Source of the DNA: Vitrella brassicaformis CCMP3155
Lineage: Eukaryota > Protista > Chromerida
Length of the DNA stretch: 26,177 nt
Assembly (NCBI GenBank): GCA_001179505.1
Contig: CDMY01000734.1
Span: 1 to 26,177 of the forward strand
Reading direction: 5' to 3'
Each line of letters opens with the position of its first letter. The first letter of the stretch is position 1. Positions 1 through 9,300 of the stretch are shown piece after piece. Below the pieces are notes generated by a model, which made no database searches, was not told where the DNA came from, and saw nothing but the letters and a program-made list of their open reading frames with translations. A program made the position numbers and the translations under genes.

Positions 1-131
1 GAGGCTCAGACGATCACTCCTCTGAGCGCCGAGTGCATGCCGTATGGGTCGCACTCCACATTCTCCTCTAATCTTCCAACGAACAACGACTCAGAGGATT
101 CATTCCAATCGCAAGCTTAGCTCGCAAAAAG

Positions 132-171
132 GTTTAGGGTTAGGGTGTGAGGTTACGAGCCCCTAGGGTTT
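132..171 (+). repeat. Short telomere-like (TTTAGGG/TTAGGG) motif cluster, telo-box-like, upstream of the XRN gene
   Basis: GTTTAGGGTTAGGG at 132-145 and CTAGGGTTT at 163-171. Further partial copies are CCCTAAC at 284-290 and CTAGGG at 318-323. Confidence 0.6.
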
Positions 172-392
172 GAAAAGTTATGAGCTCGGAACTACTAGTT
201 CTTTTTCTTCCCGAAACTCTACCATCTCACGTCGAGATGTATTGTGTCCTACGCCGACGGCTTCCGGTTAACGGCGCTGTCGGCCCTAACTCATTAGGCC
301 GCGGGCGGCATTGGGACTAGGGCGGTGATGCCATCGATTCGAACGGGATCTGTGTGCATGAGCATGGTCGCGTCGAAAGCTGACGAGAGGCG

Positions 393-1195
393 ATGATGTG
401 GATCATGGTGAAACTTGTGCTGGCGCTGCTGGTGGTGGACGGGCTGGTGTGGATGGCCACAGCGGGCATCGCTGGTTTCCACAAGTTCTTCGAGGCCACT
501 TTCAAGGCGAGCCGATCGATCAGTGCACTGAGTGCATGAACCACACAACGGAAGGCACCTGTCCTGCTTGATATATCGAGGACAGACAGACAGACAGATG
601 GACAGACAGAATCATCTTATGGGATTTATTGGCGTGTCGATCTTGTGTCACGTCTGTCTGTCTGTCTGTGTGCTTGCAGGAGGCCGTCAACGAGGACCCG
701 ACGACGCTCGCCCCCTGCAGCCATCTGTGCATTGACCTGAACCAGCTGCTGCACCAGGCACGTGCACCACAACCATCTGACAGAGCAGTCTATGCATGCC
801 ACGATAAAGCACAATCGACTCTTCCCTCCATCCCTCCCTCCCTCCCTGCATGTGTGTCGGCTCGGCTCGGCAGGCGATGACAGGCAAGGGTGCGAGCGTC
901 TCTCGTGGGCTGCGGTTTCGCTTACGGCGGCTGCTGGGCCAATTCAGACCGACGCGCAGGCAAAGCAATGCGTGGATACAGAGAGCGATGGATGGATGGA
1001 TGGCGGGATGGTCATGCCATGCGACGACAGACAGACAGACAGACCAGTGGGTGTATCGTACGTGTGGCGTGTGCAGTGTGGTGATAGCGATCGATGGCTC
1101 CGCACCCCTGGCCAAGTTGATCACACAGAGGAAGAGGCGACTCGCACCGTTGCCAACAGACAAAAAGAAGAGGTACACACACACACAGAGACACA

Positions 1196-1231
<36 letters not shown>

Positions 1232-4200
1232 CAGACAGACGCACAGACGTACCTGCGAGTGCGTCGACGTGCGTGTGTCCATTGATTGATTGCATATATT
1301 GTGCAGGGCGAAGACATTGGAGAAGTTAGCGCTCTCCCCTGGCACCCGTGTGATGGACGAGATGGACAAGACGGTCGCCGCCATCGCACTCGAGTGCATG
1401 AAGCGACAAATGGACAAAGGAAGGAGGCCATCCACGTGAGTGAGTGATGTGAGCAGACAAGACACCAGCGGGGGGGGGGGGCGGGGGCACCACACTCGTG
1501 TAGTGTATGTATGTCTGTAACAGTCAGTGTGGGGTCGTATCGTGTTGTGTGCTGTGCACTGCACTGCACGTGTGTGTGTGTAGATTCTATATCTCGGGGT
1601 CTCGGTCGCCCGGTGAGGGCGAGCTCAAGATATTCGACTGGCTCATGACGGGCATGGCCACACACACACAGCAGAACACCCGGATTTGCATCGTGGGCGG
1701 CGATGCCGACCTCCTCCTGCAGGCACGTACTGTCTGTCTGTACTCATCCAATCCACCCAAGTCACCCCCGCCGACATGTGTCTGTCTGTGCAGGCGATGG
1801 CTCTTCCGGAGGTCCTCGATATTCACGTGCTCGTACCCACAATGCGCAGCAAGCCCCACCCCAAGACGCAGAAGAAGAAGCAAGTACGGACTGTGTTGAC
1901 ACATATGACTGTCACCCACGTCACGGATACACACACGCTCGTCTGGCCTGTCTGTCCGGATGGAATGGCATGGCCTGGTGGCAGGCCTCAGCGGCTGTCC
2001 CCCCCGGCGAGGTGGTGCCATTCCGTGCCTATTCTTTGCGGAAGCTGTGCGAGGTGCTCAAGTGGTACAGCATCGACGTGGACAAGTGGGCGGCCCGGCT
2101 GGACTTCATCCTGTTGATGATCCTCAATGGCAACGACTACGTGCCGCGGCTGCCTGGGGTGGGATTCGACAACCTGCTCGAGGCATACAAACAGGCAAGC
2201 GCTTACCCACCCCACACACGAGGCACACGAGATCTGTCCAGGCGTGTGTGCTCTGTCTGTGTTGTGCTGTGTGTGTTGCAGCTGAAGCGTCGTAAGGCGT
2301 TCGCGGACAGGACCATTGTGCAGATCGACGTCAGAGATGGCGGCAGTGGCAATGGGGAAGGGGATGGCGGTGTGCGCGTGTCGTTCGACCCGGAAATGTT
2401 GTGTGCTCTCATCGACGAGCTGCACCGGTGCTGGGAGTTCGTCGTCTCCCTCGAGGCACTTCACAGAGTCATCTGGCGGCAATGGCAGGTCGGTCGCTGG
2501 GGTGGGGTGGGCGCACAGCAACCACACATGTGATGTGTGTCGTCACTCACTCTGTGGCTGTGTGGCTGGCTGTGTGTGCAGGAGACGGACAGTTTGACAG
2601 GTGAGGAGAAGCGCCTCTCGGCTGCCGCTCCTGCCGGCATCCTCAACGACTGCATCCAACAGAAACGCCTACACGCCGTCCAGGTCAGGGAGACAGGGCA
2701 GCTCGGGTGCAGTGCGTGTGGACAATCGTCTTCTCTCGTGCGCCTTGTGTCTGTCTGCCACACAGGTGGACTTCGAGTCGGCCCCAGAAGGGCATAAGGC
2801 CGTTCTGACGGTGCAGGTCAAGGCGGACGAGGCCTTACAGCGGTGGGAGGCCACTGCCGCAGACAAGGCCACCGCCAAGAGGGAGTGCATCGGCAAGGTA
2901 TGACATCAGGCACACCACAGATGGACAACGCTCAACTATGGCAATACACAGCCTGTTGTGTCCTATGCTGTGCAGTTTCTGCTGGCGACATTTCCCCAGG
3001 ACCGTCGTGTGGCCACAGACATGGTGGCCCACCTGGAGATGCAGCGCAGGAGAAGCCAGCAACGAGCCAACGCTGAGCAAGCAGAGGAGGAGCAGCAGAC
3101 CTCAGCTATCGACCAGACGGCGGTCAGTTGGTGACACAGACAGACAGACAGACAGAGAGGCGGCCTAACACATTTCTCTCTCTGTGTGTGCACAGGAGCA
3201 TGAGACACTGCTGTTGCTGCAGTCCTTAGAGACCGATGAGGAGAAACGTGCCGTCGGCAACCCCTCAGCCGTACTCAACCTGCTCAAAATGGTGTGGTGT
3301 GTGCCTACCTGCCCACCTGTGTTCCCACTCACAAACAACCGAGTCTGTGTGTGTGTGTGTGTGTGCAGAAGAAGGTGTTCGGATCGTCTGCCTTCATGTT
3401 GGATGAGGAGAGGGCCAGTGTGCCGGGCGGATACATCCGCAACGCCACACTCGCCGTCCAACATGGTGGTTGTGGTGGCGGTGACAGTGGACCACCCGAG
3501 GAGGGAGCACTGCTGTCCTCCCACCATTTCCAGGGCCGGTCGGCGGCCAGCATCAAGCAGGCCAAGGCGTCCGCCGTCATGCACGTGAGTGCGTCAGCGA
3601 GAGAGAGACACAGACAGACACCCACGAATCAATCGGCTCAGCTGTGTGTGGTGCCTGCCAGGCTTTGGAGGAGCTGTCGCCTCCTCTGTGTCGCCAACTG
3701 GCCCGGTTTGGGTGGCAGCTGGACGGATCGTGCACACCGGGCAACGTGACAGAGCCTACTGCCGTGAAGGCTTCACCGAGTGCTCCTACCGTGCCGCCCC
3801 CCTCTGTGTCATCTTCCCGCCCCCCGCCCGTCGAGACCATGTTTCCTGCTGTCGATGACTACCTAGAAGGTAAGCTGCGGTGCGCATGGCATGGCTGCAC
3901 AGGGACTCGCATCTCATGTGCTTCGTCTTTTTGTGTCGACTGACTGCCACCGTGTCTGCAGCCATTCGTTGGTGTGTGGCTATGTATGCCGAGGCGCGCT
4001 GCAGCGACTGGTGTGTGCGGTACACGGCCGCCCTGGGCAACGCCACAGGCACACGAGCACCCACCCCATACGCAATACGAGAAAGACTCAAAGGTGGCCC
4101 ACAGCCACAGCAAGCGGTGGCTGGCAGCACGATGGGCCCCCTCCCCTCTGAGTTGGCCGCTCTGGCCGTCCTCCCTGTGCAGGGCGGCCTCCATCTGCTC

Positions 4201-5258
4201 GAGCCGTGGCTGCAGCAGGTCTGCATCTCACGCTCCCTGCTCTCGCGGCCGGCAGAGGCACCCCGAGCTATGCCAGTTGCGCCAACGGATGTGGTGGGCA
4301 GCGACAGCCGACCTGAGACCACCGACGTTGATGGCTATGAGAGTGAGGGCGAAGAGGATGAGGAGGAGTGTTTTGACGAGGTGGAGGAGATGTCTGTGGA
4401 CCAGCTGCCCAGCGAGGGGCTGCAGGTGTCACTCCTGGACATGGCCGTCGGACCCCAATACGAGAACCGCGACCGTGGTAGATTAGATAGAGGCAAACAC
4501 ACACGTGTCGATGCATCTGCACCCACCCGCTGTTTGGAGTGTTTGTCGTTTGTTTGTCGGCAGTTGAGCTGCTGCAGCTGGCGATGGCCTGCAACAGCAC
4601 GTGGCTGAGCCAGAGTGTCCGCGGCAGCAGGTGGCACCGCTACAAGGCTCACAGAAGGAAAAAGGGCTACCACACCACAGGCACACCACCAGCACCAGTA
4701 GCTGAGATCGCTGTGTCCGAGATGCCTCTCTTCGCCCCACGTCCCCGCACAAAGAAGCCACAGACAGCACCGAGGCAAGGACCACCCACACCCCCATCCC
4801 CACCCCCGCAAGCACGCCTCCCCACTATCGACCCGCGTGACAGCAACACCGGTGATGATGGGGCCGCCGTGTCTGTGCCTGCCGCTGCCCCTGCACCCCC
4901 ACCCCCACCCTCTCTCCGCTTTGTGCGCAAACCCAGGAGACGTCGGAAGCTGCCCTCGCCGTCATCTGTGTCGATGATGTTACCGGCCGCTGGTGGCGAC
5001 GATGGTGCCGATGACGACGCTCAGGGGGGAGTGCCGACGTCACTGGTACTCGACTGGCGGGGCGATAAGAGGACTGTGGTGGGTGTGGGTGTGAAAGGTG
5101 TGAGTGTGCGGCCGTCCTCAACCAGGGGTCGACAAGCTATGTCGGTGTTGCGGATGTGTGGGAGGTGGGGTGCGATGGGTGGCGGGGGGCCGGTGGGGAA
5201 AGCGGGGGTGAGTGTCTTAAGTGGTGCGAGGGGAAGAGCAGGGGTCGTGTGTAGATAG
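393..5258 (+). CDS. XRN-family 5'-3' exoribonuclease with N-terminal hydrophobic leader and two inserted dsRNA-binding domains (17 exons, about 1086 aa)
   Basis: Hand-spliced exons: 393-506, 680-757, 874-959, 1077-1172, 1307-1435, 1584-1722, 1794-1883, 1985-2194, 2282-2488, 2582-2683, 2766-2897, 2976-3122, 3196-3291, 3369-3584, 3662-3869, 3962-4477, 4564-5258. They total 3261 nt and all splice phases agree. XRN motifs occur in canonical order: GIAGFHKFF (MGVPKFF), HLCIDLNQLLH (LYLDMNGIIH), RPTRSVVIAIDGSAPLAKLITQRKRR, LSPGT, SPGEGELKI, CIVGGDADL, DFILLMILNGNDYVPRLP, DYLEAIRWCVAMY...DWCVRY...APTP, LPSELAALAVLP. The last exon is low-complexity and Pro-rich, so the true 3' end is less certain. 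Confidence 0.92.
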
Positions 5259-6300: not shown

Positions 6301-9300
6301 AACATCCACCAAGAGACAGAGACCTGGGGGTGGGGGGAGTGGAGTGGCACCTACTTGATCTTGTGGTTGAGCAGGGCGACCGTGGCGTTGCGCATCATGA
6401 CAGCCAGATGGAAGGCCCTGATCGACAGCGGCCTGAAGGACATCTCGAAGTGCACCGCCGTGGCCTTGGTGGCGTCAAGGTGCAGCAGACACCGGGCCAG
6501 CACATGGGGACACGGCACACGCAGAACTATCGACTCGCGCGGCGGCGGCGCGGCCGTCGGGGAGGCCGCCTTGCTCTTCTTGTCCTTGTCCTTCTCACGC
6601 TCTATCTTTAGCAGCAGCTTCGCACCGAAGATGCGGCTCAGATTGGCGAACAGGGAGTCCCACTGGGGGCGAGAGAGCTCACGGCCATCTGGGGGTGGGG
6701 TAAATAGGGTGTGTGGGGTTTTGGGGAGAGGGAGGCACACACGGCTGATGTGATGTGTGTGTTGGCTTGGCTTACAGAATGTTCCGTCTCTGTCTTGGTC
6801 GAGCTCATATAGGTCCAGCCTGTTGGCAACCAGGGGAGGGAGCCTGCCTGTGTGTGCTGTGCATCCGTGTTTGCCTTTCTCTGGCTCGCTCGTTGGGTGG
6901 CTGACCCGTCGTCGAGCATCTCCCGTAGCCTCCCTGGTGTCAGGCCAAGCAGCCCCTTAAGATGGTCGGCATTATTTGGGGATGTCAGCAGCTCACACAC
7001 ATAGTGACGCACCGCTGCACACACACAAACACACACACACACACACACAGATCCATCCATCCATCCACCAGACGCAGCCAGGCACACACAACAGACACGT
7101 GGGTGTGCGTATGTTATGTGCGGGTGGCATGGCACACCGTACCGTCAGTGGCGGTGTGCAGGAGGTTCTGCCAGGCGGTTTGGAACAGGTACATGAAGTC
7201 GGTGCACTGCTGTGGCAGCTCCAGGGCGCGCTTGCACAGCTCCTTGTACTCGGCCCTGACGCACACACACACACACACACGTCACCTCAATCACAAAGCA
7301 GCCCCCCCCCCCCCCCCCCCCCNNNNNNNNNNNNNNNNNNNNNNNNNNNNNNNNNNNNNNNNNNNNNNNNNNNNNNNNNNNNNNNNNNNNNNNNNNNNNN
7401 NNNNNNNNNNNNNNNNNNNNNNNNNNNNNNNNNNNNNNNNNNNNNNNNNNNNNNNNNNNNNNNNNNNNNNNNNNNNNNNNNNNNNNNNNNNNNNNNNNNN
7501 NNNNNNNNNNNNNNNNNNNNNNNNNNNNNNNNNNNNNNNNNNNNNNNNNNNNNNNNNNNNNNNNNNNNNNNNNNNNNNNNNNNNNNNNNNNNNNNNNNNN
7601 NNNNNNNNNNNNNNNNNNNNNNCCCCCCCCCCCTCCCTCCCGCACCTCATTTTCTCTCTGGCGCAGTTGTGGCTGACCATCATTGCGGGGTTGTGGAGGT
7701 CGGCCGAGGTGAGGACACACGCCGCGTCGTCCTCGGCGGTGTCGAACATGCAGCCGTGCCATATCTCCACACACCGGATGGCTGCACCCAAGTGCAACTC
7801 AGCTGCATTCGATTCGCACGACCATCACACACAACCACAGAGAGAGGATGTGTGTGGATGAGGTGGTGGCGGGTGAAATGACGTGACGTACGTGGAATGG
7901 TCTTGTTCCTGCAGCTGGGCGAGAGGGCGGACGGGAAGAGCTGCAGGCAGCCATCCAGCCGGACAGGCTGACACACACACGCATGCATCCATGGGTATAC
8001 GCGCGCACATACACTCACACACACACACACCTCAGGCCCTTTGTCTCTCTGTTTCTCTGCGTGTGTGTCGGGTCAGGTACACCCCTCCATCCATCCATCC
8101 ATCTACACGCACCTGCAGCAGCACGTGTTCCGGCCCCTGCAGCATGCGATCCACAAAGTCACTGCAGAACTGAGTGTACGCCTCGCGACGGGGCGGGGGG
8201 CCAACCTGCACACACCACCCACACACAGACACAGAGACGTTGTAAGCCCCCTCCCTCCCTCCCTCTCCCTCCTTGAGTGTGCCTACCGACCTTGTTGTGT
8301 CTGGAGACCATGTAGTTGGCGACTTGTTGGAACTGCACCATCACCACCGCCCCCACATCCACACCCGTGTCGCGCAACACGCACTCACGCCAGTAGGTCG
8401 CACTCGCGTACAGGTGACGCACGTTGTCATGCTGCAGGGCAGTGACAGTGGGCAGAGTGTGTGTGGGCCTTAAGGGAAGCATACCTACCACGAACATCTG
8501 AGGTGCGTTGACAACGGCAATCATGACCACGTGGTTGTTGTGAGACCCGCCGCACCGCAGGTCCTGACCCACTGCATTCATGGAGGCATCGATCGCGTCA
8601 ACACAACCACCCACACGCACCGAAGGAGAGGAGTCTTATGGCGTACAGGCGCCCCTCTTAGCTTGGCTGTGTTGTGTCTTCTGCTCACGCGAGAATGGCC
8701 AGAGGCTTATGATTTGTGGCAGCAGCGGCGCCCGCGCGCCGCTTGTGAAGCTGTCCTGCACCGCCCGGATGACCGCCTGAACGCACACAGACACGCACAC
8801 AGGTCTTTCTTTGTTTCTTTGTGTGCATGTCATGTGTGTGCGTGTCCAATATATGCCTGCCTGTCGTGGTGCGATATGGTTGTTGTTGGAGAAGAAGAGC
8901 TCGTCCCGCGAGCCGAGCAGAAACAGCTCGCCGTCGTGCATGAACCCCACATCGTGCGTGCGATAATATGCCACTTCTACAGAAATGGGTGGATGGATGG
9001 AACAGCCATCTATCTCATTCATCTGTGTGGTGTGTGTCCCTCCCTCCCTCCCTCCCTCCCTCCCTCTCTCCCTCTCTCCCTCTCTCCCTCCCACCGACAT
9101 ACCTGCCTTTTGTCCTTTGTCATCGTCGACTTTGATGCGTGTCTGCACATATCGCTGCATGTCAATTGGGTGGAAGTAGTTGCATACCACGCTCCCCTTG
9201 AAGTAGATCTCCCCACAGACACCCGCCGGGCACACTTCCCTCGTGAAGGGGTTGACGATGCGCAGGTCGACATCGTCCGCCGGCGCCCCGTGGCTGACGA

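Follow-up and report, generated by a model that had tools for sequence, protein, structure and literature searches.

The window analysed here is the whole 26,177-nt contig C734 of the Vitrella brassicaformis assembly (72.70 Mb, 1064 contigs), the assembly used for all whole-genome searches. A multi-exon gene predicted to encode a divergent XRN-type exoribonuclease lies on its plus strand, from position 393 to about 5255. The gene model was spliced by hand from the three-frame translation, and databases and profiles were searched exon by exon. The coordinates are listed in Table 1.

Table 1. Features of the window around the XRN-like gene, with matches to the profile of the diatom-type branch
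Feature	Position	Strand	Basis or remark	Branch-profile match (profile positions; window; score)
Dispersed repeat, one end	1-320	+	Ends 72 nt upstream of start codon; contig begins inside	
Upstream ORF, 22 codons, other frame	328-396	+	Frame 1 segment 298-393	
In-frame TGA	381-383	+	Closes frame upstream of ATG 393	
Putative leader, 24 hydrophobic codons	393-464	+	KD19, GC3, codon log-odds	
Met21, alternative start	453-455	+	gtgtggATGg, T at -3; four residues before conserved Gly	
CCACAG, possible alternative 3' splice site	455-462	+	One codon before Gly25	
Nuclease domain start, alpha-1 helix region, G-I-A-G-F	465-506	+	Branch profile	1-16; 465-512; 4.2 bits
Intron 1	507-679	+	GC donor AAG/GCGAGC, CAG acceptor; frame and profile collinearity	
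Exon 2, first catalytic Asp motif I-D-L-N-Q-L-L-H	680-757	+	Branch profile	30-43; 719-760; 6.3 bits
Exon 3	874-959	+	Hand-spliced	
Exon 4	1077-1172	+	Hand-spliced; Pfam XRN_N and branch profile	62-126; 1042-1239; 33.1 bits
Exon 5	1307-1435	+	Hand-spliced; branch profile	129-162; 1311-1412; 9.1 bits
Exon 6	1584-1722	+	Hand-spliced; Pfam XRN_N and branch profile	169-217; 1579-1737; 47.5 bits
Exon 7	1794-1883	+	Hand-spliced	
Exon 8	1985-2194	+	Hand-spliced; branch profile	260-298; 2087-2200; 35.8 bits
Exon 9	2282-2488	+	Hand-spliced	
Exon 10	2582-2683	+	Hand-spliced	
Exon 11	2766-2897	+	Hand-spliced	
Exon 12	2976-3122	+	Hand-spliced	
Exon 13	3196-3291	+	Hand-spliced	
Exon 14	3369-3584	+	Hand-spliced	
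Exon 15	3662-3869	+	Hand-spliced	
Exon 16	3962-4477	+	Hand-spliced	
Exon 17	4564-5255	+	Hand-spliced; 3' end provisional	

The splice that joins position 506 of exon 1 to position 680 of exon 2 requires a GC donor at 507. GC donors, all of the form AG/GC followed by A or G, were assigned in five of the 16 introns (window positions 507, 758, 960, 1723, and 2195), and in introns 2 and 6 the GC donor is forced by the reading frame, with no GT alternative; a GC donor for intron 1 is therefore acceptable. The share of GC-AG introns in this XRN-like gene (5/16) is unusually high. Further downstream, an assembly gap, represented by a run of 300 N bases with poly-C flanks, is located at window positions 7323-7622 inside an apparent minus-strand gene.

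Only 392 nt lie between the start of the contig and ATG 393, and most of them belong to a dispersed repeat with at least seven other copies in the genome, 77-97% identical (see also L017, L018, and L019). In every copy the homology stops at ...GGGACTAG, and in other copies the repeat extends at least 0.4-0.7 kb further left. A telomere-like GGTTTAGGGTTAGGG stretch occurs within the repeat at about 129-145. The idea that the leader is itself part of the repeat was rejected, since the homology ends at 320, and no further copies of exon 1 were found in the Vitrella genome. Between the repeat and the gene lies a short upstream ORF with three ATGs, the TGA of which overlaps the ATGATG at 393-398; this arrangement would be compatible with termination and re-initiation, and is relevant only if the transcript begins upstream of 328, with a long 5' UTR.

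The leader encoded by exon 1

According to the original prediction, exon 1 opens with a signal-peptide-like leader, having a hydrophobic core and an A-X-A motif directly before GIAGF, and its N-terminus is fixed by an upstream in-frame stop codon; both points agree with the sequence. An in-frame TGA at 381-383 precedes the ATG at 393-395, the frame is open over 393-506, and codons 1-24 end in A-T-A (456-464), with G-I-A-G-F following from 465. The leader is laid out as a basic Lys7, an apolar core of eight residues (codons 8-15), Asp-Gly, and then a run ending in A-T-A. Its mean Kyte-Doolittle value is 2.28 over 19 residues and reaches 3.7 over the best eight residues. Among 588 ATG-started open stretches of 24 codons in the six frames of the window, such hydrophobicity is found in three (0.5%), while the membrane threshold of 1.6 is passed by 20. 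The features of an ER signal peptide are thus present, namely Lys7 as the n-region, the apolar codons 8-15, and Ala22 and Ala24 before Gly25. Two details are atypical: Asp16 breaks the hydrophobic region, and what follows would make an unusually long and apolar c-region.

The composition of exon 1 supports the view that the leader is translated. Third codon positions are G or C in 21 of its 24 codons, compared with 73% GC3 in the other exons of the gene; against the GC content of 55% in the introns and upstream DNA, a likelihood ratio of about 71 in favour of a coding leader is obtained. A codon score (log-odds of the gene's remaining exons versus its introns) gives the leader +4.2 bits in frame and -17.9 and +0.1 bits in the other two frames. 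The value of +4.2 bits was reached by none of roughly 1500 intron windows, and 15% of exon windows score below it. The contexts of the first two in-frame start codons, ATG 393 (G at -3) and ATG 405 (A at -3, G at +4), are better than that of Met21.

Relationship to XRN exonucleases and to a diatom branch

Assignment of the gene to the XRN family is based on exons 4 and 6, which matched the Pfam XRN_N profile (cut-off 22.9 bits) at positions 88-111 with 26.0 bits and at positions 181-225 with 36.9 bits, respectively, and were also recovered in a whole-genome scan with this profile. Alignments read by eye show that the acidic active-site motifs I-D-L-N and A-I-D-G are present (branch profile), and that G-E-G-E, G-D-A-D, and G-N-D are kept relative to the diatom orthologue. 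Three further XRN_N loci with far stronger matches were found in the Vitrella genome, and the two of these paralogues whose first exons could be read have the canonical M-G-I start; exon 2 gave a weak BLASTP match to the L-D-M-N-G-I-I-H of a paralogue. The XRN_N domain, the acidic motifs, and a domain start at the Gly2 position are common to the Vitrella gene and canonical XRN1/XRN2 (Rat1; PF03159; PDB 3pie, 2y35, and 7opk). However, the Vitrella gene is more divergent (26-37 bits per exon versus up to 158 bits in a paralogue) and carries a 24-residue hydrophobic leader, whereas the canonical enzymes start with M-G, have no presequence, and are cytosolic or nuclear.

Relatives closer than the canonical enzymes were found through a metagenome scan with exon 8, which returned one locus (L012) with a stop-free ORF of 1057 codons running off the contig end. 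Exons 1, 4, 6, and 8 match this locus collinearly. Its covered part has no introns, compared with 16 in the Vitrella gene. The best tblastn match of exon 1 in the 5.3-kb L012 sequence places residues 25-37 on G-I-S-G-F-R-G-W-F-E-S-Q-F. The G-I-S-G-F motif of L012 begins at residue 100. The extension upstream of it opens with basic residues, continues through a hydrophobic core to S-Q-A plus Phe, and then becomes rich in Ser/Thr; it is predicted to be a classic diatom bipartite plastid signal.

A word-index search with the L012 ORF revealed 133 proteins. The best 120 of these 133 all have XRN_N, and every named protein among them is from a diatom, including Fragilaria crotonensis, Nitzschia inconspicua, Seminavis robusta, and Fistulifera solaris (P0003-P0122); looking up their clusters added no organism names to these. 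Presequences were counted in the 101 proteins, drawn from the best 120 of 133, whose alignment reaches the G-I-x-G-F motif. At least 15 residues precede the motif in 85 of the 101; of these 85 extensions, 64 contain a hydrophobic core (KD10 at least 2.0), 67 a small residue-Phe pair beyond the core, and 55 both. In the latter 55, the stretch between the Phe and the motif is 15-97 aa long (median 36), contains 27% Ser/Thr, and has a median of four basic residues and one acidic residue. Complete MMETSP transcripts (P0097) show the same build. The gene calls of 13 relatives begin directly at M-G-I-K-G-F; inspection of the contigs of two of them revealed an upstream Met in the same frame, with a signal and a transit peptide, and hence a start misplaced by the gene caller. 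Homologues thus do share the leader, and in a stronger form than that first described for exon 1: the typical extension of the diatom relatives is a complete predicted bipartite plastid presequence ending at the same Gly. Immediately before the motif, Leu occupies position -2 in 73 of the relatives aligned there, and position -1 is Met, Phe, Asn, Tyr, or His, with Met in 32 of 101; these two positions may mark a site of transit-peptide processing that has been conserved, or a remnant of the ancestral start codon.

To place the Vitrella gene, the plus strand of the window, translated in three frames, was searched with a branch profile built from the 101 mature N-domains. The profile's six best matches lie in exon order, collinear with the hand-spliced model (Table 1). 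The exon 1 match alone is weak (E about 0.07), but the order of the six matches makes Gly25 equivalent to profile position 1. Exons 6 and 8 score well above the three canonical Vitrella XRN loci, which reach 8-15 bits in these regions, and a search of the Vitrella genome with a diatom protein found this gene as the sole locus; therefore, among the Vitrella genes it is the one nearest to the branch that bears presequences. By its sequence, the gene is assigned to this divergent, diatom-type branch of XRN enzymes. Both share G-I-x-G-F-x-x-[WF]-F-E and D-x-N-Q-L-L-H, with 42-52% similarity in exons 4 and 8, and in both the predicted targeting extension ends at the same Gly. The difference lies in the extension itself, which in the diatom proteins comprises a signal peptide, a small-residue-Phe site, and a transit peptide of 15-97 aa, whereas Vitrella has only the signal-peptide part.

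The original alignment of GIAGF with Gly2 of XRN enzymes is borne out through these relatives rather than by exon 1 alone. Besides the branch profile, the motif Gly corresponds to position 2 of the Pfam XRN_N profile in the three diatom proteins scanned, and in alignments of relatives it falls within one residue of residue 1 in solved Xrn1 chains. On their own, exons 1 and 2 are too short for such searches: neither gave a significant match in Pfam or PDB, nor did exon 1 in a BLASTP comparison with the first exon of a paralogue. In the Vitrella protein, 24 residues precede the Gly2 equivalent, which is residue 25; the predicted precursor lacks the Met1-Gly2 start of the XRN family and would conform to it only after cleavage.

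No dsRNA-binding domain was detected by Pfam in the three diatom relatives scanned (L012:2130-5300, P0097, and P0060); the dsRBD insertion reported for the Vitrella gene may be lineage-specific, or that of the relatives may be too divergent to detect. A library search with exon 16 revealed a metagenomic read-through ORF with 95% amino-acid identity over exon 16 (L011, ENA ERZ893784) on a 2.9-kb contig that does not reach exon 1; the contig corresponds to about window positions 2270-5200, and a close relative of Vitrella is thus present in an environmental sample. A kinase repeat protein returned by the same search was spurious, and word-index searches with the stop-free read-through ORFs 850-1326 and 1649-2530 gave no matches.

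Cleavage, destination, and alternative readings of the leader

Taken together, these data make it fairly probable that exon 1 is the real first coding exon and that it encodes a cleaved ER-type signal fused without a linker to the Gly2 equivalent of the nuclease. We infer translation from ATG 393, entry into the ER, and the position of cleavage. The leader would direct co-translational insertion into the ER, and signal peptidase would cut after A-T-A (codons 22-24), most likely at A-T-A/G, freeing a native-like N-terminus with the alpha-1 helix needed for XRN catalysis. Vitrella would thereby keep only the signal-peptide half of the bipartite presequence of the branch. Since the protein has only this half, and a transit peptide could not be accommodated, its entry into the ER is likely, with the odds of a cleaved signal somewhat better than even.

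The alpha-1 helix of XRN enzymes (residues 3-12) is a mobile ratchet, and activity falls when the first four residues are deleted (PMC9512700). The original prediction had offered an alternative cut, I-A-G/F, which would leave Phe at +1. Such a cut would strip four conserved residues of the alpha-1 helix, a deletion of the kind that lowers XRN activity (PMC9512700), and a cut before Phe29 is unlikely because the G-I-A-G conserved across the branch would be lost.

Further routing is less clear-cut. No residues separate the leader from the conserved domain, and the first 20 domain residues contain two Lys versus four Asp/Glu (net charge -2). A transit-peptide segment, which would be hydroxylated, net basic, and typically 20 aa or more in length, is absent, and so is Phe at +1, the A-T-A/G cut leaving Gly there. 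A signal peptide abutting the domain is found in none of the 55 relatives, in which the minimum spacer is 15 aa, so the Vitrella arrangement is unprecedented in the family. Bipartite plastid-targeting signals of red complex plastids were reportedly described by Patron and Waller in 2007. Compared with the bipartite signals of chromerid and other red complex plastids (Fussy et al. 2019, PMC6668581), the Vitrella leader has the first module, an ER signal peptide, but neither the second module nor the aromatic +1 residue; reference plastid proteins of chromerids have bipartite extensions of 40-80 aa, and Phe at +1 is less conserved in Vitrella (PMC6668581). Because it has no transit peptide, the leader was not classed as a bipartite plastid signal. 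The originally proposed route via the ER to the plastid, the periplastid space, or the exterior thus stands in part: the leader is built like an ER signal peptide and ends at the conserved start of the family, whereas the plastid step is at odds with the missing transit peptide and with the 40-80 aa rule for chromerids. After the ER, an outer plastid compartment, the stroma reached by an atypical route, or secretion are possible destinations, and the family history points to the plastid.

Instead of being cleaved, the leader could be retained as a signal anchor: its 24-29 apolar residues would stay embedded and hold the nuclease on the outermost plastid membrane or on the ER, on either the luminal or the cytosolic side. 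Some outer-compartment proteins of the apicoplast use anchors rather than bipartite signals. The KD19 value of 2.28, which clearly exceeds the membrane threshold of 1.6, and the continuation of the apolar run into G-I-A-G-F are in line with an anchor. However, Asp16 would fall in the middle of the membrane, and the small residues at -3 and -1 suit a cleavage site. Moreover, a retained leader would be joined without a linker to the alpha-1 helix, which must move in catalysis (PMC9512700), so the leader is more likely cleaved than retained. We consider an uncleaved anchor unlikely.

A second alternative is that the leader is not translated, because the mRNA starts downstream of 405 or because the first ATGs are bypassed. 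Translation would then begin at Met21 (ATG 453), and the XRN-like product, extended by three residues at its N-terminus, would reside in the cytosol or nucleus. A Met21 start would place the first catalytic Asp at residue 37, close to residues 35-36 in two canonical Vitrella paralogues; the absence of a transit peptide is also in keeping with it, and the upstream ORF ending on ATGATG could favour downstream re-initiation. Against this, codons 1-20 are coding-like in composition, Met21 has the unfavourable T at -3, and a hydrophobic in-frame ATG-started extension rarely occurs by chance. In addition, all relatives with complete N-termini have presequences, and Met precedes the motif Gly in only 32 of 101. 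Both a bypassed leader and the cytosolic or nuclear product that it implies seem improbable on this evidence.

The spacer-free arrangement could, alternatively, reflect an incomplete 5' model, in which 393-462 is the end of an intron with CCACAG as its acceptor and the true signal and transit exon or exons lie beyond the contig start. This acceptor resembles those of introns 10 and 12, CCACACAG and GTGCACAG, the contig begins in a multi-copy repeat 392 nt upstream, and the transit peptides of the relatives are all 15 aa or longer; chromerid gene models are, moreover, often 5'-truncated (PMC6668581). However, on this model an intron would have to end, by coincidence, in a stop-free, in-frame, ATG-started, signal-peptide-like ORF with exon-like GC3 and codon usage, the joint chance of which we estimate at well under 1%, and no signal-peptide-like ORF was found in window positions 1-392. 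A truncated model is accordingly judged unlikely, and a cleaved ER-type signal remains the preferred reading of exon 1.

Possible role in plastid RNA decay

RNase J is the bacterial-type 5'-3' exoribonuclease of plant chloroplasts and has a metallo-beta-lactamase fold; plastid 5'-3' RNA decay is credited to this bacterial-type enzyme. An imported XRN-like nuclease would provide the same plastid activity with an unrelated fold. In the Vitrella assembly no clear RNase J was found: the only match, in the generic N-terminal portion of TIGR00649, scored 24.6 bits (C477:23475-23735), and RNase_J_C had no match, although exon-by-exon scans of this kind can miss genes. This negative result is consistent with an XRN-type enzyme working in the plastid. 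One could tentatively hypothesise that a eukaryotic XRN lineage was recruited into the red complex plastids of diatoms and chromerids for the 5'-3' RNA trimming or decay that falls to RNase J in plant chloroplasts, with the Vitrella member relying on atypical import or acting in an outer or ER-derived compartment.

To our knowledge, all characterised XRN enzymes act in the cytosol or nucleus, and no description of an organelle-addressed or secreted XRN was found in the literature searched. If the branch is imported, organellar RNA in algae with red complex plastids would be processed by a eukaryotic nuclease that has been given a new address, and the branch would be a candidate for the 5'-end maturation activity in the RNA metabolism of diatom and chromerid plastids, and perhaps of the apicoplast. 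The Vitrella copy would be an informative natural variant in this respect, as its putative export signal directly adjoins the catalytic alpha-1 helix, leaving no transit peptide in between, and its localisation would bear on how strictly the bipartite rule applies in chromerids.

An ESM Atlas feature search with residues 103-620 of the diatom-branch protein P0097 placed it nearest to generic XRN clusters, mostly labelled Nucleocytoviricota (giant viruses); the proximity of giant-virus-labelled clusters to the nuclease of this branch is considered here as a lead only.
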